From contig NW_003314276.1 of assembly GCF_000143415.4 (NCBI RefSeq), positions 583,630-647,629 on the forward strand: a stretch of 64,000 nt of DNA, in the 5' to 3' direction. The DNA comes from Selaginella moellendorffii (lineage: Eukaryota; Plantae; Lycopodiophyta). Made by a program: the position numbers and the translations under genes. The notes below the pieces were generated by a model that saw only the letters and a list, made by a program, of their open reading frames with translations, was not told the origin of the DNA and ran no database searches. Shown here piece after piece: positions 6,218 through 64,000 of this stretch; within the stretch, counting starts at the first letter, position 1; each line of letters starts with the position of its first letter.

Positions 6218-7470
<1,253 letters not shown>

Positions 7471-7627
7471 CTAGTCCTCACTGAAATATCTAATCGAAGG
7501 TATGTCACAAAAGCCTACTCTGGCTGTTGTGGTGTTGCTCGTCTCTGTAACTGTGCAGCACAAAAGACCATTCAATAGTATGAGCAACTCTTTTCTGGCT
7601 AGAAACACAACAAACTCTCACTCTCTT

Positions 7628-9146
7628 CTACTTGAGCACAGTAATTTGAACTTTACACCTGCACGGGACTGCCTCGCAGATCCTGGTGGACACAACCTCA
7701 AGCTCGATGGTGCGACCTTTCAATGCAAACTTTTTCGTGCTCGACTTCCTGCCTTTTACCAGCCTAGCTCGACGACTCCAGCCTCTTGACACTTTACCTT
7801 CTCTCTTGCTAACAATCACCTTACCAGTGCCGCTCGCCTCGGCCCTTGCGAGCCTGAAAGTTCTCGAGCGCGACCCTGGCCGCCTTGAATCCTTGGCTGT
7901 AGCAGCCGTCGTCACCTGCTTTGTCACCAGCGCTGCGGAAACACTCGATGGCCTCGCCCTTGGATCGTCCTCTTTCTTCTGGCACTGCCTGAAAGCAGAT
8001 GTCTTGGCAGCTCCGCCTTGTCCCTCGATCAACCACCTAAAAGCTAGGAAAATGTAGCCTTGAACAAGATAGACAGATGGCTTACTTCTCCCACAGCTTC
8101 TTGCCCTGCTGGACGTGTCTGTCCATCTCGTCGCAGCACTGCACAAAACAACTCATGGAGTTATGAAGTTTCCTAAGCTAGAAAACAAACTTGTTCCCAG
8201 TGCTGCGTGCAAGGGGCGATCGTCAAATATCGCCAGCAGATGAAATTGTAAGACTCAACGTTGTGCTCCACCTGCACCGACGCGAAACAGATCGCAAGCC
8301 TTAGACAACGAGCAGAGTGTGTGTACCGGAAGGCCAATGCGTATCTTGAGCACAGTGTGCATGTGGTTCTCGTATGCTCGCTTGTAGTTCTCGACAATGC
8401 TCGATATACTGTAAGCTAAAAGCCAGTGTTTGAGGGAGAGCGATATTGAGCATCCTTACTTGTCGTAGTCGAACTCCTTGTTCATGAGGTCCGTCCGCCG
8501 GCTTATCCCAAAGGCGCCATACTTGTCCCCGTAGCGAACCAGTAAGACTATATGTTGGTGCACCTGTACTTTAGTATACATTCGACCATCAGTCTATCGG
8601 ATCCACGGAAGAGAGAAGCATTTTGTATGGCACCTTGTCGTCCTCTTGTGTCTTGAAACTCAAAGGGATGCGCTCAACATCCTGCATGCCTGCCTGCGCA
8701 CGAGTAAGGAAAAGCTGTCTGAGTTGCACCTGGCACAAGAACCTTACTGTGAGATACAGCGCGAGAAAAACTGCTTCCACGCACTTGATCGGTTGTGGTG
8801 AATAGATCATCTGAGAAACATACACGCGAGAAGCATACCCATGAGAACGATGTAGTTGCTTACCATCTTCGCAGTGTCCATGATGCGTGACAGTGGTCTG
8901 AACTTGTGAGAGTTGAAGCTGGTTGTCGGTGTTTGCTTGTACTCAAACGAATTTATGTACTGCAATCCGAACATCAGGCATCCATCCGTATTCGTCCTCG
9001 CATGACAAAATTCAAACACTTACGTGCTGGATCGCTTTGAGACGCGCTGGAGCAGGAAACTTGAAGAAATTATTGGGGAGCTGAGGCCTCTTAGCTGCTG
9101 TTGCCGAAGGATGAGCGCCAACTCCAGCTGCAATCGCGGCTTCCAT
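7628..9146 (-). CDS. VASH: Vasohibin-like tubulin tyrosine carboxypeptidase (transglutaminase-like cysteine protease), about 9 exons; 5' end may extend to about 9362
   Basis: The spliced product ARLKAIQHYINSFEYKQ..HKFRPLSRIMDTAKMMIYSPQPIKCVEAVFLALYLTAGMQDVERIPLSFKT..QHIVLLVRYGDKYGAFGISRRTDLMNK..HTVLKIRIGLPVEH..ICWR parallels human VASH1 (ERLEAVQRYI, PIKCLEAVILGIYLT, RHIVLG, YGALGMSRREDLM). Confidence 0.9.
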
Positions 9147-9635
9147 GCTGAGAGAAAAAAGCGCACTTTAGCTAGTCCGAAATACGGTATACTTGAGATG
9201 AGAGTTCGGCACCTGTCCATTCCTCGAAACCTTTGGCAACTACAGTCTGAGGTGTCCCATCCCTGAAAGCAGGCACTTTGCTTGAGTCACTATCATGAGG
9301 AGTAGCAACAACGAGGGCAAACGCATCGAAAACTCATCCACGACAGCATCTCTATAGAGCATACTCCAAACCACGGCCGCATTTCCAATGAACCAGCCGA
9401 GCAGCCGATATCGACACAAATGGAGGACCCCTTCTTGCTTACTTCCGTTATCTACACCATAGCCCGGACTAGACCAGAGAGAGCGGGAGAGAGGAACCTC
9501 TTGGGCGCCGGCACTCCACAGACGAGGACAGCCGTGGGATAAGTGGCTGGGGCCACGTGTCACGCTTGCGCGTAACAGATGACGCTTGATGCTTGCTGAC
9601 TCAACCAGATATAGATCCCCGGAGCATATTCCCAT

Positions 9636-10398
9636 TCAAACTTGAATGAGCCGCGAGCAAACGTCCCCGATGGAAACACCCGATTGCTTGTCGTCCCTCC
9701 GCTCTTCTCCGTGAATCGATGACGACCCCGCTGCGAAGGACTGGTGGGGATTGCAAATCACGAACGCGAGCTGGCCCTGCTCGTTGAAACCGGCGGAGCC
9801 GGATGCCCAGACCAGGCCATCCGTCTGGATCCTCAAGAACTTGTCCTCCTTCACCGTCACTCTCCCCTCTCCGAGCGCTGCACTGGACTTGGAGCCCATC
9901 TTGCTCCCCCTGGGATACCCCAGAATGTACACCTTAGAGCCCGCCTCCAGTGATTGCCTAGAGATCTTGGAGGCGTCGGACATGAGCGGCGACACGTCTG
10001 ATGTCGTGATGGGGTCGCAAGCGACGAGTGTCAGGTCCAAGTCCCTGTTGGTCACGAAGAATCTGCAAACAAAGATCATCATCTTCCCATTTATGAATTC
10101 GAACGGCATCGCACCTCTGAGGCCACAACTTGAGCTCGAGCGACGCGGCTGGAGGAGTACGGACGTTGACGGTTGCACCTTCCGCAGCCGCTGGATCCGG
10201 AAACGTAGAACTGGTTGTCAAGATGACATCCTTGCTGATGATAATCCCAAACCCATCGCTGCTGTCGACGCTAACCACGGAACTCCCCCTAGCGATCAAG
10301 CTCTTCTTGACTTCGTCTTCGTTGATCGGTGAGGGTGCCACGATCTCTCCGGCGGAAGCCGGCGGAACCACACAGCACAGCTTGTTCAGTGTGTCCAT
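9636..10398 (-). CDS. Plant trypsin-like-fold protein (At3g07210-like family), paralog A, 2 exons
   Basis: GFGIIISKDVILTT..PQR|FFVTNRDLDLTLVAC..KVYILGY..GEGRV..TDGLVWASGSAGFNEQGQLAFVICNP; intron 10063-10114. Confidence 0.75.
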
Positions 10399-47230: not shown

Positions 47231-48799
47231 CAGTGGCAAACTCACATTCAAAAAGCCAAAGTCATTCGTGAAGCTGTTTACAACACTTTTCCAGACTTTG
47301 ACATGGTTGGTTTCAGAGATAAGAAGGTGAATAGGAGGAGCTGGTGCATGATTTGCTTCGTTCTCAGCAGCTGAGGCCGCTTGTTTTTGAAGAAGGCAAT
47401 GTGAAGCATAGATACGAGTGTCCAGAGACATTCATTCGCATTATAGTTGATGTGGTTTATGGCAGCAAAGGAGACTTTTAAAGGCTGTATCAAAGAAGCA
47501 TCCAGTTAGAAAGTATGAGGCAGAGCAGTCAATTGTAGACCTGTACACAGCTAAATTTCTAATCGATGGAACTTTAGCAATCAAACTTTTGAAGCCCACA
47601 TGTCATGGCTACGGTACTACGAGAAAGAAGGATATTTTTCGTGTTGGTAGTAGCATTGTTGAGGCTGTGGTTTAAGACAGGTGTCGTGCGTGCTCTAGTG
47701 GTTCGAATCACTCAACTCAGTGAAGAGGTACGCAACATCTAAATTAAAGGACTTATCACTTGAGGTAAATCAATTTCCTTTGATTTGTCTCTTGAATAGA
47801 AATGCTTTCTAATATTTCCTCTTTCATTTGGTTTTGATCAGAGCATAGTGAAATGGCTTGAGTATATGACTGAAGCATTTTGGGACATACAAAGTTCAAG
47901 AGAGCAGAGCTTCCAGAAAAAGGTATATTTGGACGCGGAGTTGACGAATACTCCGATGACAATCTTTATAAGCTTTTGATTTTTTATATTTTGATTGTTT
48001 TAGAACGCGTGTCATATTGCCACAGCAAATCTAGTTGGACATAGTGTAAGTACTTACATAGCATTATTTCACAAAATAAAGTTGGAAACTAATAGAAGAA
48101 GGTGTCAATATTTAAGTTTAGTTCTAATTATCTACTTATGAGAAATTCGAGATGTAAGTTGATCTTTACTTAAATTTCTATGTCTACTCAAAGTTTATTT
48201 TTACAACAGAATGTAAAGCCTAGCAAACACATCTCTTAGATGGATGCTGCTATACAGAAAAGAGATTAAGCACAAAAGGACAGTCTTAGAACTCTAAATC
48301 AAAAGGTTTGTTGAAGTTTCAGATTTGTTCTTATTATTGTTCTTCTAGCAGGTAGGAAAAAGAAGAACAGAGGCTATGGAGAATAGTGAAGAATGAAGAG
48401 TTTGCAGCCAATGTAACTTCAGGTGCAAAATCTGCAATAGAAAAAGCAGGAAAAATTGTGATATGGAAATTAAAGATTAACTTGTATGATCTATGTTCTT
48501 AGGTGGTTCCTAGTAATCAATATGAACTGCATCATAAGAAATCATCTATTCATTATGGATCCTAATGGAGGTTTGATTGGTCATGGAAGAGTGGTGCCAT
48601 GCTCAGCAAATTCCACTATTCACTGCCAAAATCTTAGGCCAATCCATTTAAGAATCAACATATGAAGCATTTTACTAACAGTTTAGTTCACACATGTTTG
48701 AAAAACTTATAGGAAACAGTTGGGTGATAAAGTACATATGCAAAGCAATCACTCTAGAAGTTCAATCTCAGGCATATATAACTTGCTTTTTATGACATA

Positions 48800-48955
48800 T
48801 ATAAAGTTCAATGAAACAGGTTGAAAAAAAAATTGATTGTAATGTTATTATTTATTCTTTAGCAAAGGAAAATTGGGTATAAAGTTCAATGAAACAGGTT
48901 GAAAAAAAATGATTGTAATGTTATTATTTATTCTTTAGGAAAGGAAAATTAGGTT
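48800..48955. repeat. Tandem duplication, about 78 bp x 2
   Basis: ataaagttcaatgaaacaggttgaaaaaaa..ttattctttag(c/g)aaaggaaaatt appears twice. Confidence 0.85.
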
Positions 48956-50089
48956 GTAATATGATCAATAACTTTTCAATCTCTTCAATCTTTGTTACCA
49001 TTTGACTACTAATACATGTTATGACTTAAGAGTTAAAAAATCTAATTCACTGCTTGGATTTTTTTGCAAGTAATTGTACCTTTTACAATTGTCCAAATTT
49101 CAACCACTTATGCTTAAGAGATGTACTGATAAGTCATAATATAATTAAAAAAACTAACCTTTAATTTGAATAACTTTCAATTTCATGGATTTGAAGCTAA
49201 TGAGGATAAAATTATTGGTTCTTGCTTTGCAAACATAAGTATATCTTTCACAGATGAATTTTGGTGTTGATGTTTTTATACATTAGTTTTTATATTGTTT
49301 AAAGTAAAGTTAGAGAAACACTGGTAGTCAATTGGATTGAAAAATGCCAAGTACTTGCTATTTGTGGAAGACACAAAAATAAATTATAATTTAAATAATG
49401 TCACTTCTATTTCAATGCAATTTCACATTTTTCATTATCTCAATTATTAAAATTATTCATTTATGTGATTTGTAAAAGTGAATTTTTAGCAATCATTAGA
49501 AAAAAACTTGAATCACTTAAACCATACACCACTATTTTTATATCTTCCTTGTCCAATCCTTAGTGAGGGTGAAAAGAAAAGGCATTTCAAATAAGATATT
49601 AACAATTAAAAAAACCCTTTAAAACAAAAATTTTTTCCTTAAAATTTTTAAAAGTGTAAAGTCCAACTCTACAATTACAATGCGTGTACTAATATTAGTG
49701 TAATGGATTTTGGTAGCCATCGAATTGATTTCAATTCAGACCACTTGCTCCTATATCAAATTGATACAAACTAAACTTTTAGGCTAATTAATATGCACAT
49801 TTTCTATATTCCCTTACTATATTCCATACACTCATATTTGTGGAGGTGAGGGGCACCTTTGATTGTCCTTGAAGAATGCTTGGATTTAGGATTTCAATTT
49901 AGATTTAACTTTTGTATTGTCTAGATCTAACTTTTTGCATTGTTTAGATCTCCTTTTCCTTTTAGCTTTTTTTTGCATTTATTTTCTTTTATTTTTTCCT
50001 TTTCATTCATCTTTATGGCAAATCAGCAATCTCCTCCTCTTTTGACTTTAAAGTAACAATTGGTATAATTGCTTGATGTTATGCGATTG

Positions 50090-50640
50090 CAATTAAACAA
50101 CCAAATTCAATTGATGGCGGCATTCATGACACGTGGTGCAATTCCTCCTGTTCTTGGTGCCAATCCTCATGTTCAACCAGAGTTCTTTCGCAGGAATTCT
50201 AGGGATGATGTGTACCATTAGTTCGATCACTTCACAATGATTGGGACATATTATTCTTGGGATGATGCTCAATGTTTGCGTGAGTTTCCCACATGTCTCA
50301 AAGGGACAGTGTTGCCATGGTACAATGGTCTGAGCGCAGCCATTCATGGGGATTGGAGTGTTCTCTTGGACGTCTTCAAACACGCATTTGAATATGTCAA
50401 TGATTGTGATGATGCCTTTTAATAATTGCATCATCTTTGTAAAGGGCCATCTAAGTTGGTGATGTAATTTGGCATTCATTTCTGAAGCCTCTTGCTTCGT
50501 GTGGAACCAAATATGTTAGAGCGGATCAAGATAGGAATGTTGTGGCTAGCACTTTATCAAGATTTTGTCAAAATTGTGCATGCACTTGCTCCTACCACCC
50601 TTAACAATGCTCTTCGCTTAGCATAACATTATGAGATGTC
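50090..50640 (+). mobile_element. Decayed Ty3/Gypsy gag fragment
   Basis: FDHFTMIGTYYSWDDAQCLREFPTCLKGTVLPWYNGL..DWSVLLDVFKHAF resembles retrotransposon gag; stop codons are present. Confidence 0.6.
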
Positions 50641-51254
50641 AATTTTTTCCACTTCTCGCTACATGTCCTTCAGCTCCACTTTCTGTGGGTGATAGTCCTG
50701 TTCTAATGGAGGTTGATGCTGCTACTGCTTGAGTCCAAGGACAAGGGCAAAGACGTGGTCGTGCTTGTGATGTTTGTTACTGGGCCACTCTCTTCTCATG
50801 TTTTTGATGAGTTTGTTATTTCAGCATCTATAAATTTTCTAGATGAGGATTCCTATTGGCGGTTACTATATTTGACATTCAGTGTTCACAAAGTGCAAAG
50901 CAAAATTTACCTTCTCTTGATAATGTTCGCAAGGCTCAAAAAATTGAGTCATGGATTCAAAGGCTTTAAAATGGGTTTGAAAATCTTACATCACTTATTA
51001 ATGGCTTGCTATTCTAGCATTTACATTTTTAATATCACTTTGAAAACAACCTTATTTATTTTGTGGGGATGGATGCTAATGATCATTTATAACTGGTGGT
51101 GCCTTCGCTATAGAAGACCATTAAAGTTCTTTTGTAGATGGGCCGGGATCTAGAGGAATGTCAAGACGAGGCATTGATAGATCTATAGGTGGTATTAATT
51201 GTTCTTAATCCCATAATTTCTAAGCATTTCTGCATAATTTCTACATTGGTCTAC

Positions 51255-52450
51255 AAAAGCTGCTGTGATGAGCTATTTTTTCTTTCTTGTAACTTGGGTC
51301 TTCACCAACTTGGGACTTGGAAGGAGAGTCCAATCCACCTATACTTCAACTAGCTGGTAAAAAACGTTTTGATGCTAAGCAAAGAAAGCTGAAGGAGTTT
51401 CACTCGGAAGACCCTAAAGAATTGTGTGTGCGTGATTAAGGAAAGGCTTTGAAGGTATTGAATCTCTATGTATTTAACCATGTGATCTACAGCTTGATGA
51501 GGACATCGACTTAGAAACCTTGGGCAACTCACATGCAGAAGAAACTTTGTCAGATCTCGACAATGAGGAGGTAAATAACATTCAACAGTCGTATCTCAAT
51601 TGAGTTCATGTCCTTTGCCTACAGAAGAATTCTTACTTGAACAACAATGAGGAAGTACGATTGAAAACTGTCATCTGGACGGAAATGAACAAGAATACCC
51701 TCAGGTGTTTGTCTAATACTTCAGCTGTCAGGTGTTTTAAAACTCACAGGAACTGGAAAGGAAGCAGCAATAATAGCTGCAAGTGAAGATGCACAGGGCA
51801 GAGTCCGCGGCAGAGGCAGCACGTCAGATGCTGGAAGTAAAGGTGAGAAAGAGTATGTAGATTGATAACATTTTGAAAGCTGCTAAAGATATGCTCGCTT
51901 ATTTATGTACATAAAGATCACGAGTTAACTTCGATGTTCTGGACAAGCTATTTGACGGAGAGATATGAGCGAAAGCATTCTTCTCGATCAAGTTCGTCAA
52001 TGTTTGATTCAAAAACAGGAGCTGTGGCTCTGTCAGAGATTTTCTCTGGAACTGGTCCGGAGGTTTATTTTCAGCAATTTTTCTCGATTTTTTTTGCCTG
52101 GACTTCGACTGGCGTGAGGAACAGGAATTGTTTCATTGAAGTGCACGAACCTTTTCGGAGCTTGCGACGGCGCAGCGGCGATGTCAGGGGCCGATGCCTC
52201 GTCCAGATGTCATTGAAGGCCGATCAAAGGAGAATCCGCAAGGATTGGTGGACATAAAATGATCTCTAAAACTCCCAGAAGATGGAAATGCGATCAATCT
52301 CACTGTTATGGACGAGAAGAAAGAAGTGGAATATCAATGCGATGGACAAGAAAATGGAAACGAAGGAGGAGAAGAGGAAGAGGAAGAAGAAGATTCGAGG
52401 GAGGACTCTATGCGCAAACGCAAGAAGAGTACTACGAAGAGTATTAAAAC
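51255..52450 (+). pseudogene. BRF1 pseudogene fragment (C-terminal half) with an internal inverted piece at about 52020-52220
   Basis: ETLSDLDNEE|..YLNNNEEVRLKTVIWTEMNK, AAEAARQMLEVK, RVNFDVLDKLFD and GGLYAQTQEEYYEEY*. Confidence 0.78.
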
Positions 52451-59572: not shown

Positions 59573-60898
59573 CTACTGCTTGGTGTCCTTAAACCACCAG
59601 TTTGCTGGAACTCCAAGCTCTGCCTTGAGATAGTCCGATCTCTTGTTCACCAGCGCGATATCCCGGGTGCCTGAGACACTGAAGGGCTTGCTCGGCCCTT
59701 GGTAGCCATCAACCAGGTGAAGCAAGGCCTCCAAGTTGTGCAGATCGGTCAAGCCACCATCTTCCCTCAGAAACGGAGAGATGTCGCTGCTGAGCTCAAA
59801 CTCGGTGCCAACATGGGTGTAGGCCCATGGGAACCTGTGGAAGATGAGCGAGATGATGTCACAGCTGTCCTCGTTGACAATCACCCCTGGAACTTTGGGC
59901 ACCAGGTCTGCGCCATTGCGTGTCTGGAGGACTTTGAGCCCGAGCTCGAGGCACCTGTTCTTGAAACCCCGGTTCCCAACTCGGGGTGCCGAGAACGTGA
60001 AGACGGACACCGGGGTATTGCTCCCGGGCAGCCCAAGCTCTGTCACGTCGTAGGCGCTGAGGAGTGCAAGCGCGCCACCCAGGCTGTGGCCCGTGAACGT
60101 CATACTCAGCTGCTCGCCCTGGTAGAGCCCGACCAATCGCTTGATCTCCGAGTGGAGCTGCTGCCTCGCGCTCATCCCGGCCTGATCGCCGGGGACTGGA
60201 GACGTGTAGATGCTGAGAAATCCCGTCTCCACTTTCACGCCTTTGGTGTTGTGATCCGTGGGGTCGAGCCCGGTGGGGCGGAGGAGATCCTTGAGGTTCT
60301 CGATCCACTCGAGCTGCGTCACCGTCCCGCGCCAGGCCACCACAATGTCGCGGCGTCCCAACCGTCGGATGGCCTCGTCCGACGTGGCAACCGCCACGAA
60401 GCCCATCCAGTTGGTGTCCGACGTCCACGAGTCGTCGCCGGGTTGGGCGTTGGAATTGGAGCGCTTGAAGAAGCTGGGCAAGCCCAGCTGCGATGTTGCG
60501 TAGAGATAGGCCGTGATTTCGTATCCCGTGCTTGGGAGTCCCACGGATTGGAGGAGCTCCTCCTTGGAGAACTTTGTGTCTCCACAGAATTCCGAGCCCT
60601 CGCTGTATTCGAAGCCGTCGTAGCAAGCCTGCGCGAATTCGCCGTATCGGATGATCTCCCGCCGGAGCCGCTTGTCGATGGAGGCGTTGGCGGGCGGGAG
60701 GAGCGGACTCCAGTGGCATGCATCCCGCCAGCCTGGGGTCAGCACCAGCTGCGTCTCCTCCAGCTCCACAACGCGCGCGCCATGACCATCTCCTTCAGAT
60801 CTCTCCAACGTTCTTCTCTTGAATGAGAATGACAATGAATCTCCTTCTCTCTCCAACGTTCTTCTCTTGAATGACAGTGAAAATGAAACTCGTTCCAT
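59573..60898 (-). CDS. Phospholipase A1 (DAD1-like), copy 4
   Basis: Intact ORF, 3575 bp from copy 3. The ORF track shows one amino-acid difference (SLS/SFS). Confidence 0.92.
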   Translation of the reverse strand: MERVSFSLSFKRRTLEREGDSLSFSFKRRTLERSEGDGHGARVVELEETQLVLTPGWRDACHWSPLLPPANASIDKRLRREIIRYGEFAQACYDGFEYSEGSEFCGDTKFSKEELLQSVGLPSTGYEITAYLYATSQLGLPSFFKRSNSNAQPGDDSWTSDTNWMGFVAVATSDEAIRRLGRRDIVVAWRGTVTQLEWIENLKDLLRPTGLDPTDHNTKGVKVETGFLSIYTSPVPGDQAGMSARQQLHSEIKRLVGLYQGEQLSMTFTGHSLGGALALLSAYDVTELGLPGSNTPVSVFTFSAPRVGNRGFKNRCLELGLKVLQTRNGADLVPKVPGVIVNEDSCDIISLIFHRFPWAYTHVGTEFELSSDISPFLREDGGLTDLHNLEALLHLVDGYQGPSKPFSVSGTRDIALVNKRSDYLKAELGVPANWWFKDTKQ

Positions 60899-61549
60899 GA
60901 TCTCGATGCTCGCTCTGATGGGCTTGGACAATTGTTGATACGCCTATCGATCGATCAGCTCCTCCTTGGCGAGTATGGTTGCAATGAATCAGATGATCGC
61001 TTCGTAAAAAACTTCTCCCCTTGTTGTTTCTCCCTTCGTGTAGATTGCTGGTGGAATGCTGAGATTGTGGCAGAGGATTTATAGCAGTATCGCTTTCGAA
61101 GTTTGCCACCGGGTCAAAAGCATATACGAAATTCTCGCGTTGATCTCTTCAATTTCTTCTCGAATGGGAAGCATAATAGTCAAAGTTCAAACCACCAGGG
61201 TCAGCCAAAGGAGCTATCGCGTCTTTGACCAGCAGACTTTCACTGAACTTTCACTCTTGACTCTCATCCCTTCAGTAAAGCAGTTGCGAGGTCGGGATCA
61301 CTGTTCTCCTCCTCACTTGGCGATCATAGGTGTAAATTGGAAGTCCCGACACCAGATACTTAATCATCTCCTTGACGAACAGCCTAGAGTCTTGATCAAG
61401 GAAAGGCTCCCAAGAGCAGCCCATCACACTCTAGGGCCACCACACTCTTGGAATCCTTGGCTGCTGCTAGTGATTATGGGTAGACAACAATGAGCCTGTA
61501 GAACAAAGTGAGGTGGCATATGTGGATGATGAGAAGGTGCATCGTTAAG

Positions 61550-63605
61550 CCAATTTTTATACTTCTTAATATTAATATTTAATTATATTAATTTTTATTT
61601 ATATTAATTTATTTTTTACATAAGCAAAAGTGAAATATATTAAGTTCTACAAAATAATTGTTATTCATTTAGATTAATCTTGTATCTAAACATATTTATA
61701 ATCTATAACTTTCCTAAACACTTTCTAGTATATTTTTGGTTTGCTTAAGGTGGTAGTGGATATACCTCGAATATACTTGGATATTCTAGATTATTTACTA
61801 TCTAACCATTACTCTTTTCTAACTCAATTACACTTTCAACCATTGTTTAACTGTAGGTACATGCATTCAATGGAGTATGTTGTGTCAGGAACAGCTGATG
61901 GAGTCATTTGCATCAATACTACAGCTCACACTGGACAATTGGGTTTAGTACAGCAGCAAAAGTAGTGGGAGGTATCAATGCGATTCAAGTTTCTCGTTTG
62001 ACATTCCTTTACAGGGTAATGTTCTTTGTATTTATAATTAAGAAACATGTTTATAATTTATAAACTTTCCTAAACATGTCTTAGTATATTCTAGTTTATT
62101 TTACCATTTAATGGTTAATATTCAATAAGATCAATCTTGTTTTTATAAATTATAAACATGTTTATAATTATAAACTTTCATTTGATTAATTAGAACTATT
62201 AAGTAAACCTGCAATGCACAGCAAATTAGTATTTATTTTACCATCTAATTTGATAAGATTAATTTTCAATTATAAATTGTAAAAATGTTTATAATTATTG
62301 ATCAAATGGATTATTCAATAATACTAAACAGGAATGAATTGTTTCAAGTTTCTTGTCTTTTTCAATGATCTCCACCTTGCTCCATTTTAGAATGAGGTAG
62401 AGGGCTATCTCTCTTTCCTTTACTTTGAAGCTCATGGTGAATAGCTTTCTTCTCTATAGCTAGAAAAAGTAATGAAGATCAAGTCATTAGTGTCTAAACC
62501 CAGACACTGTTATTAGTGTTTGTAAGTCTTCATTCAAAAGTGGGATTAGGATTGTGACTATGACTTTTATCATCATGGTCCTAAAGCTCATTCTGTGTGG
62601 GAGAGGACACACAAAATGTCATGGAAACAATACAGAATTTAGACAGTATTAAATGTCCAAACTTTTTGAAGGCTTTCCCTCTAGCTTGGGATGGAAAGGT
62701 GGTGATGGTATATATGGACTTTTGAGCACTATTTGTAGGCTGACATTGAGAAATAAGTTACAAGCATAACACACATTTCGTTTTTGCAATGCTCATCTTA
62801 GTTTGGTTTCGATTGATTGATCCCACCAATGAGTTTTTATTTTTTTTATTTATTTATTTCCTTTTCTTATCAGTTTCTGATGATAGAAACCGAAATGGCA
62901 TTCCAGACCTTGCAACAAAATCTTTTAGAACAAACTTTAAGGCTAGTACATGCAAGAGTAATTACAAGCAATAGAAGAGAAATCAGGTCTTCAAACCATT
63001 TGAATCATAGTCTTTCATTAGATTGAGCATTTAAGATTCTCCTGGATATAAGATTGTAAAGAAAAATGTGAAATAAACTGATCTTGACTGGAAATCTTTG
63101 TTTGAGTTTTAAAGCATAATAATCTATTGCTCAAACGACTATTTTAGATATGATAATGTTTTAATTATCCATGTTGGATTATTTTTATAAAAAATATATA
63201 AAAAACCATTTGAAAGAAAACCAAGATATGAGTTTTTGAACAAAATTTACAAAGAAACATATAAATATAACCTTTGTGATTTTTTTGGTTTGCTTAAGCA
63301 AACCTATAGAGGGACTGGGATGGTAATGGATAAATCTAGAATATGCTTGAATATTCTAGAATATTCTACCATCTAATGGTTGTTATTCATTTAGATTAAT
63401 TTTGTATTTATAATTTATAAACATGTTTATAATTTATAAACTTTCTTAAACCCTTTCTAGTATATTCATTTTATTCTATCATCTAATGGTTGATATGTAG
63501 ATTAATCTTTTGTTTATAAATTACAAACATGCTTATAATTATAAACTTATTTGATTAATTAGATTAATAAGTAAGAATAACACTACTATTAAGCAAACCA
63601 TACAA
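61550..63605. repeat. AT-rich repeat family with the GGTTTGCTTAAGCAAACC palindrome (also at 58085-58330)
   Basis: Recurrent ttattcatttagattaat and aaacatgtttataatttataaactttc blocks; perfect palindrome at 63288-63305. Confidence 0.65.
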
Positions 63606-64000
63606 TGTGTAGCAATTTATTTTAAGATTCAATTTCAAACTCATGTTATTGATGTGTTTATTTCAAGGGTTTATTACTAAGTTATTTTTGAATTAAGCTT
63701 TTATGAATGTTTTCTTCGTGTTTATAAAAGTGTTTATATTGCGCATTTTGATTACACGAGAAGAACTTAGATGCTTACTAGCAGCAGCTAGCAGCTCATA
63801 CAATACCTTGCCTAATGCATTGTAATCCAAAAAATGAAAATACCTCTAATGACTGTTGTAAATTCCAATCTAAGTTGTGTTTTCTTACAAAATCCCACCA
63901 GTGTTTCCGTTTGACACCTTTGTGTGAGCCCATTTGCCACAGCACCATGCTGCGTGCGTGTCCTTTTCGACCAGTTCTCCTCCCAGCTTTCAGGTAAAGT

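Follow-up and report, generated by a model that had tools for sequence, protein, structure and literature searches.

The minus strand of the 64,000-nucleotide (nt) stretch of the Selaginella moellendorffii genome analysed here (NW_003314276.1, positions 583,630 to 647,629; hereafter the window, whose own numbering is used throughout) carries a vasohibin-type gene, LOC9633452. The gene is transcribed and encodes a protein with the fold and the Cys-His-Ser triad of the vasohibin family, but in the contigs assembled from four sequencing runs the joint at intron 5 breaks the reading frame just past the catalytic Ser. On balance we lean towards the view that the gene is functional and that its productive isoform is made as a minority form or at a particular stage. 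An earlier note, made from the letters of the window alone, had described the gene as hidden in short exons. It is not hidden, as RefSeq already annotates LOC9633452 and both UniRef and RefSeq carry the vasohibin name, so that the family identification is not new. Little is added here beyond two points: the majority splice at intron 5 breaks the frame, and the C-terminal tail differs between isoforms.

Family membership, catalytic residues and fold

Nine minus-strand exons can be rebuilt from the sequence, with GT-AG borders throughout and introns of 49-70 nt; the exons add up to 1071 nt, or 356 codons and a stop. This 356-residue model, which is that of the earlier note, corresponds to residues 64-419 of RefSeq XP_002970819.2 (isoform X1), and an exon-by-exon comparison found each window exon peptide in that protein in collinear order. 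Our searches were made by individual exon, while full-length analyses used the public RefSeq proteins that contain all exon peptides. RefSeq names the products of LOC9633452 “uncharacterized protein isoform X1/X2” and “vasohibin-2 isoform X3/X4” (XP_002970819.2 / XP_024531399-401). A full-database HMMER search with exon 5 led to a near-identical 384-residue protein, and a cluster look-up identified this protein and seven others as S. moellendorffii RefSeq/GenBank proteins. A second scaffold represents the other haplotype, where the RefSeq names are “vasohibin-1 isoform X1/X2” and “vasohibin-2 isoform X3”. The two haplotypes share the gene order vasohibin, peroxidase, RPL13, BT1 and differ at seven positions in the coding exons, five synonymous and two non-synonymous, with no stops or indels. 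The S. moellendorffii genome also holds an old paralogue, XP_024525379.1 (“vasohibin-2-like”, 311 amino acids), on GL377570.1.

Against the Pfam Vasohibin profile (PF14822), for which the cut-off (gathering score) is 24 bits, RefSeq isoform X3 scores 190 bits (E 5e-56) over profile positions 49-243 of 245. Taken singly, exons 2, 3, 5 and 6 match this Pfam family alone and do so collinearly (71-101, 103-123, 145-176 and 180-204), with exon 5 reaching 32 bits by itself; the Pfam domain of the paralogue is likewise intact, at 152 bits. A search of the entire set of PDB sequences with exons 2, 3 and 5 returned VASH1 and VASH2 chains only. The assignment to the vasohibin family, for which the earlier note had proposed a search with the Pfam profile, is thus borne out by the exon-wise matches, by the score of the RefSeq protein and by the VASH1-like fold described below.

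The three catalytic codons had been placed exactly: PDB alignments put the Cys encoded at 8781-8783 on VASH1 C169, the His at 8552-8554 on H204 and the Ser at 8501-8503 on S221, and all three residues are invariant across 15 plant and algal homologues. Across these homologues Y111, K123, R125, K145 and R199 are invariant or nearly so. A constant offset of 23 makes them the equivalents of VASH1 Y134, K146, R148, K168 and R222, which we take to line the pocket for the tubulin tail, and the equivalent of R223 is conserved too. The basic HKFRP (K..R) and SRR patches, also noticed earlier in the sequence, are conserved as well.

An AlphaFold2 model of RefSeq isoform X3, made with a 97-sequence alignment, has a core of residues 80-290 with a predicted local distance difference test score (pLDDT) above 90, whereas residues 1-77 and the tail are disordered. 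The best 23 matches in a Foldseek search of the PDB were all structures of VASH1/2 with SVBP (small vasohibin-binding protein), with E values down to 4e-22. VIA-align superposes model residues 80-280 on VASH1 103-303 with Z 30-31 and a root-mean-square deviation of 1.4-1.5 Å over 199 residues, at 35-37% identity; the next family, CPR-C4, reaches only Z 12. The VASH1 core used in vitro comprises residues 57-307 and encloses SVBP (PMC9750192). Compared with VASH1, the Selaginella fold has no confident counterpart of residues 57-102, the N-terminal part that encloses SVBP, and the conserved ATG is separated from the start of the fold by only 16 residues, too few to make room for one. This comparison of the model with VASH1 hints at independence from SVBP, which would be plausible.

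Descent and distribution

A word-index search with RefSeq isoform X3 gave 95 matches at E <= 1e-5, all of them with PF14822. The named matches come from Selaginella (two loci, two haplotypes each), the bryophytes Marchantia, Riccia, Ceratodon, Sphagnum and Physcomitrium, the ferns Adiantum and Psilotum, and Klebsormidium, Trebouxia and Micromonas; the Marchantia match is already named “tubulinyl-Tyr carboxypeptidase”. None of the 95 matches is from a seed plant, despite the many angiosperm proteomes in NCBI, in a check that left Ginkgo and cycads outside. The statement that this is not a standard flowering-plant gene therefore agrees with the search, in which bryophytes, ferns and green algae are present and seed plants are not.

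The maximum-likelihood tree follows the species tree, with support of 100/100 for land plants, 95/92 for Selaginella with ferns and 99/97 for the two Selaginella loci as sisters; two unnamed Logan proteins are placed by the tree inside the ferns. The gene was thus inherited vertically, and its loss falls on the stem of the seed plants or later. We considered contamination or horizontal transfer and rejected both, since the tree matches the species phylogeny and the gene has the same neighbours in both haplotypes.

A survey of the family from 2016 had vasohibins stop at bryophytes, “not in vascular plants” (PMC4866520), and two plant papers deny that plants have vasohibin homologues (PMC11720312, 2024; PMC13688044, 2026). 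The “no vasohibin in (vascular) plants” of this literature is corrected by the Selaginella and fern genes: LOC9633452, its paralogue and the fern sequences show that vascular plants inherited vasohibin and that the loss lies towards the seed plants. Our literature search found no paper on vasohibin in lycophytes, ferns, Ginkgo or spermatozoids, and a phylogenetic-profile preprint on land-plant spermatogenesis has no mention of vasohibin in its supplements. Detyrosinated tubulin has been studied in flowering plants, and we know of no enzyme identified as responsible for it there. Marchantia, Physcomitrium, Ceratopteris and Selaginella would be tractable plant systems both for the role of detyrosination and for the question of whether the loss of the gene went with the loss of motile sperm. 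Taken together, the gap in the literature and the frame-breaking splice make the locus one of modest interest.

Splicing at intron 5 and the function of the gene

The stretch is present in 20 runs from one organism and at least eight studies, with word shares of 0.52-0.59, the level of a spliced transcript. We compared the contigs of four runs (X1, X4, X11 and X14), from four studies, over positions 7000-9700. The runs are presumed to be RNA; the GT-AG introns are absent from the contigs, whose source is therefore spliced RNA. Contig joints confirm introns 1, 3, 4, 6, 7 and 8 exactly, and for intron 2 the confirmation comes from loose contig ends that match. Of the roughly nine GT-AG exons proposed earlier, nine can thus be rebuilt and seven of the eight introns are borne out by the contigs, with a different acceptor in use at intron 5.

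Intron 5 (8409..8459, minus strand) ends in two AG acceptors 7 nt apart (...ttttAG cttacAG). The AG at 8410-8409 keeps the frame and is the one used in the RefSeq models and in the nine-exon model; only with the resulting 51-nt intron does the Pfam profile run on gapless across the exon 5/6 boundary. Use of the AG at 8417-8416 adds 7 nt to exon 6 and loses the frame directly after ...FDYD, past the catalytic Ser, so that about 35 unrelated residues are added before a stop five codons into exon 7. An mRNA of this kind is, by the usual rule, a target of nonsense-mediated decay. At the same phase-2 position the paralogue offers just one acceptor, a clean one. None of the RefSeq isoforms of LOC9633452 uses the 8415 acceptor that dominates the contigs.

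Several observations weigh against a working enzyme at this locus. In all four runs the intron 5 joint is 8460|8415, with 44 nt skipped and the position unambiguous, and the frame-keeping joint 8460|8408, which would skip 51 nt, is in no contig of the four runs. Mapped on the AlphaFold2 model, the frame break would cost the product about 75 confident core residues, comprising a helix, two strands and two more helices. The contigs themselves keep the majority path and drop minority variants, and they carry no tissue, strand or ratio. At the protein level, the position of VASH1 R203 is a Gln in Selaginella, and an activity of land-plant vasohibins is argued from homology, as the assayed members of the family are from animals, trypanosomes and Chlamydomonas. 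Run X14 carries the variants of the other haplotype and has the same 8460|8415 joint, and intron 5 is identical in both haplotypes. The earlier note had called the gene intact, which holds for the genomic frame and fails for the assembled mRNA of four studies; it had also named RNA junctions that break the frame as evidence against it beforehand, and the intron 5 joint is such a junction in each of the four runs. A word-index search with a 157-residue partial protein, aimed at Selaginella open reading frames (ORFs) in Logan that span the exon 5/6 junction in its frame-shifted or its productive form, found no Selaginella transcript ORFs of either kind. The 8415 acceptor dominates these four data sets, and use of the productive acceptor is compatible with the contigs.

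The exons downstream of the frame break have nevertheless been kept. Compared with the old paralogue, exons 6-8 show a non-synonymous divergence (pN) of 0.21 and a synonymous divergence (pS) of 0.85, as against 0.23 and 0.83 for exons 1-5, with synonymous sites saturated in both sets. Since exons 6-8 are constrained like exons 1-5, they have been translated, and a productive isoform mattered over evolutionary time; and because the contig-dominant mRNA is frame-broken, an active enzyme would have to come from a minority or stage-specific isoform.

We can present a tentative scheme on this basis. LOC9633452 is a vertically inherited land-plant vasohibin with several mRNA forms, of which the one dominant in contigs is broken in frame after the catalytic Ser, and the productive mRNA encodes a transglutaminase-like Cys-His-Ser protease. 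The productive protein combines the VASH1/2 fold and substrate-pocket residues with a disordered basic tail and an N-terminus that is short. Judged from its homologues, it would dock onto microtubules through its core and basic tail and cleave the C-terminal Tyr from alpha-tubulin. The predicted detyrosinase activity draws on the conserved triad and pocket and on non-animal precedents: VASH is the sole tubulin carboxypeptidase of T. brucei (PMC12714142), and Chlamydomonas VashL mutants lose axonemal detyrosination and are disturbed in intraflagellar transport (PMC11770126). Binding of microtubules by the tail and any role in spermatozoids would be predictions of the same kind.

The main alternative, conceivable though in our view unlikely, is that the locus is largely unproductive, either because it is on its way to a pseudogene through a cryptic acceptor or because it is constitutively restrained by frame-breaking splicing and decay, with the paralogue supplying the activity. 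The frame-breaking joint is indeed the sole intron 5 joint in four studies and on both alleles, and the paralogue, whose corresponding intron ends in one clean acceptor, has its Pfam domain of 152 bits intact; yet the downstream exons of LOC9633452 are unrelaxed relative to the paralogue, and it is the paralogue that sits on the longer branch (1.09 vs 0.48). Other odd forms also fit an unproductive locus, namely the contigs that retain intron 2 and RefSeq isoform X2 without the Cys exon (see below), whereas the haplotypes, with their five synonymous and two non-synonymous changes and coding exons free of stops and indels, do not suggest decay, and a minority productive isoform is compatible with the contigs. 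We thus continue to favour a functional gene with a minority or stage-specific productive isoform. A more specific version, in which splicing acts as a gate, such that vegetative tissues of the sporophyte use the 8415 acceptor and make only decay-bound mRNA while use of the 8408 acceptor in spermatogenesis confines detyrosination to the flagellated sperm, seems to us quite improbable.

If the gene is functional, the question is what for. A link to the flagellum is plausible, as it would fit the taxon list and the VashL result. That the enzyme is dedicated to flagella, needed only for the spermatozoid axoneme and spline microtubules and lost in seed plants with motile sperm, is a possibility that we consider doubtful. 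All named relatives come from lineages with a flagellate stage, with no seed plant among the 95 matches (Ginkgo and cycads being beyond the taxon check), and the 2016 survey likewise has none in seed plants (PMC4866520); the same survey, however, lists ciliated animals without VASH, Drosophila and C. elegans, so the link is not strict (PMC4866520). VashL acts on axonemal doublets (PMC11770126), but animal VASH is widely active on cytoplasmic microtubules, and the Selaginella transcript occurs at good k-mer depth in contigs from at least eight studies, seemingly of ordinary RNA samples; that all of these were of sperm-bearing tissue is most unlikely, even though the tissue labels were hidden. 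Finally, a vasohibin-fold protease with a plant substrate other than alpha-tubulin would be in keeping with the Gln at the R203 position, with the missing SVBP-enclosing N-terminal segment and with the fact that the assayed family members include no land plant. We give this little credence, given that plants and algae alike have kept the triad and the Y/K/R pocket residues and that tubulin tails are the target of each assayed member, be it from animals, trypanosomes or Chlamydomonas (PMC12714142; PMC11770126; PMC9750192).

Gene structure, neighbours and relation to known vasohibins

All features of the gene lie on the minus strand. A 5’ exon (9213..9400), with a GT donor at 9212 and an in-frame ATG at 9220, is joined to exon 1 across a 65-nt GT-AG intron (9148..9212; joint 9147|9213 in runs X1, X4, X11 and X14). 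Its upstream end is uncertain, at about 9393-9486, with contig breaks and depth changes at 9364-9486, and it is either 5’ untranslated region (UTR) or the disputed N-terminal extension of RefSeq. The RefSeq models run 63 residues beyond the 356-residue model at the N-terminus; we rejected this extension as unreliable, because the haplotypes differ there, the structural model is disordered and the extension’s intron is unseen in contigs. The conserved start ATG at 9146 (MEAA...) lies in exon 1 (9024..9147), whose RPQLPxNFFKFP motif is common to the ferns and the paralogue. Between runs there are 12-nt indels in the 5’ region, with 12 nt omitted at 9399 and GGGAGGGGCGGG inserted behind 9520; these probably distinguish the two haplotypes.

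Exon 2 (8864..8959; joint 8959|9024) aligns with VASH1 128-158 and carries the HKFRP patch, in which K and R are conserved. Contigs end loosely at 8811 and 8864, on either side of intron 2, and contigs of 97 nt in runs X4 and X14 (8797-8893) cross this 53-nt intron, which amounts to a frame-breaking intron retention; the transcript assembly is split at intron 2 because of these retention contigs. Exon 3 (8748..8810) encodes PIKC, with the Cys codon. In RefSeq isoform X2 (XP_024531399.1) this exon is replaced from an alternative acceptor inside intron 3 (8694-8747), giving the junction ...TAKM-VQLRQLFLTRAQ-AGMQD...; the product would be without the catalytic Cys, and the form is unseen in the contigs of the four runs. 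Exon 4 (8634..8693; joints 8693|8748 and 8563|8634) is found in the RefSeq isoforms. Exon 5 (8460..8563) holds the catalytic His and the Ser, the latter followed by RR, and its PDB alignment covers VASH1 203-229. Exon 6 spans 8327..8408 in the productive form and reaches 8415 in the RNA contigs. Exon 7 (8191..8271), with joints on both sides, carries the conserved VEHN..CWR motif, and exon 8 (8086..8138; joints 8138|8191 and 8036|8086) contributes 17 residues.

The end of the folded core and a basic segment with a net charge of +9 over 64 residues, common to both C-terminal forms, are encoded by exon 9 (7825..8036). Downstream of it a 274-nt GT-AG intron (7824-7551) is spliced out in three of the four runs (joint 7550|7825 in runs X1, X11 and X14); unspliced contigs coexist, spanning 7522-7854 and, in run X4, running contiguously over 7000-8034. 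When this intron is retained, the terminal exon is that of the nine-exon model and of RefSeq isoform X1 (8036-7628, stop at 7628-7630), and only then are the distal 65 Lys/Arg-rich residues read, which add +15 over 65 residues. The spliced form is RefSeq isoform X3, ending ...EASGT-VTETSNTTTARVGFCDIPSIRYFSED, with the coding part of exon 10 (7471..7550) ending ...RVGFCDIPSIRYFSED and the stop at 7471-7473. The paralogue ends ...RVGFHEIPSIRYFHD, and the ...IPSIRYF... ending shared by both loci means that the short C-terminus is conserved within Selaginella. Of the long Lys/Arg-rich tail noticed earlier, the shared basic segment therefore stands, while the distal half is specific to the intron-retaining isoform. 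The positively charged C-terminal region of animal VASH1/2 prolongs microtubule residence (PMC9750192), a precedent that would hold in full for isoform X1 alone.

Next to the vasohibin gene on its upstream side, and on the minus strand too, lies an ORF (9639-10178) for a Trypsin_2-like peptidase, which scores 27.3 bits against a cut-off of 27.6. RNA contigs of 1.1-1.7 kb run unbroken from this gene into the vasohibin 5’ exon (9213-9700), which suggests read-through or overlapping UTRs, and the depth steps at 9364-9486 suggest two overlapping transcripts. Downstream, also on the minus strand, lies a class III peroxidase (6896-7437; Pfam peroxidase, 80 bits), and in run X4 one contig is unbroken from position 8034, in the terminal exon of the vasohibin gene, past 7000 and into the peroxidase gene. 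Further away, the window has blocks of low G+C content at 48001-52000 (0.34) and 60001-64000 (0.39), against 0.49 for the whole window.

Human VASH1 and VASH2 belong to the same Pfam family as the Selaginella protein, share its fold and triad positions, and likewise have a disordered basic C-terminal tail. In comparison with them, the Selaginella tail is different and alternatively spliced, and the activity of the Selaginella protein is predicted from homology. Chlamydomonas VashL (Cre05.g241751) and T. brucei VASH, both from unicellular flagellates, are non-animal members with experimental evidence for tubulin detyrosination, and we liken them to the Selaginella protein by description rather than by sequence alignment.

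Bryophytes and ferns have vasohibin-like genes too (in Marchantia, “tubulinyl-Tyr carboxypeptidase”; in Physcomitrium, A0A7I4DR91, “Vasohibin-like protein”; also in Adiantum and Psilotum), which are orthologues in one well-supported land-plant clade, with 43-66% core identity, and share the N-terminal RPxLPxNF motif with Selaginella. These relatives have longer tails of unrelated sequence, and the short C-terminus with ...IPSIRYF... is found only in the two Selaginella loci. The paralogue (L002 3001-4558, GL377570.1) has the same intron positions as LOC9633452 and this short C-terminus, is without the long basic tail and lies on a longer branch. The paralogue has kept the phase-2 intron after FD(Y)D, and ORF fragments from moss genomes end at the same point, although these fragments are genomic exon-plus-intron read-throughs and as such uninformative on splicing. 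The transcript-derived proteins of the relatives, unlike the Selaginella contigs, cross the exon 5/6 junction in frame.

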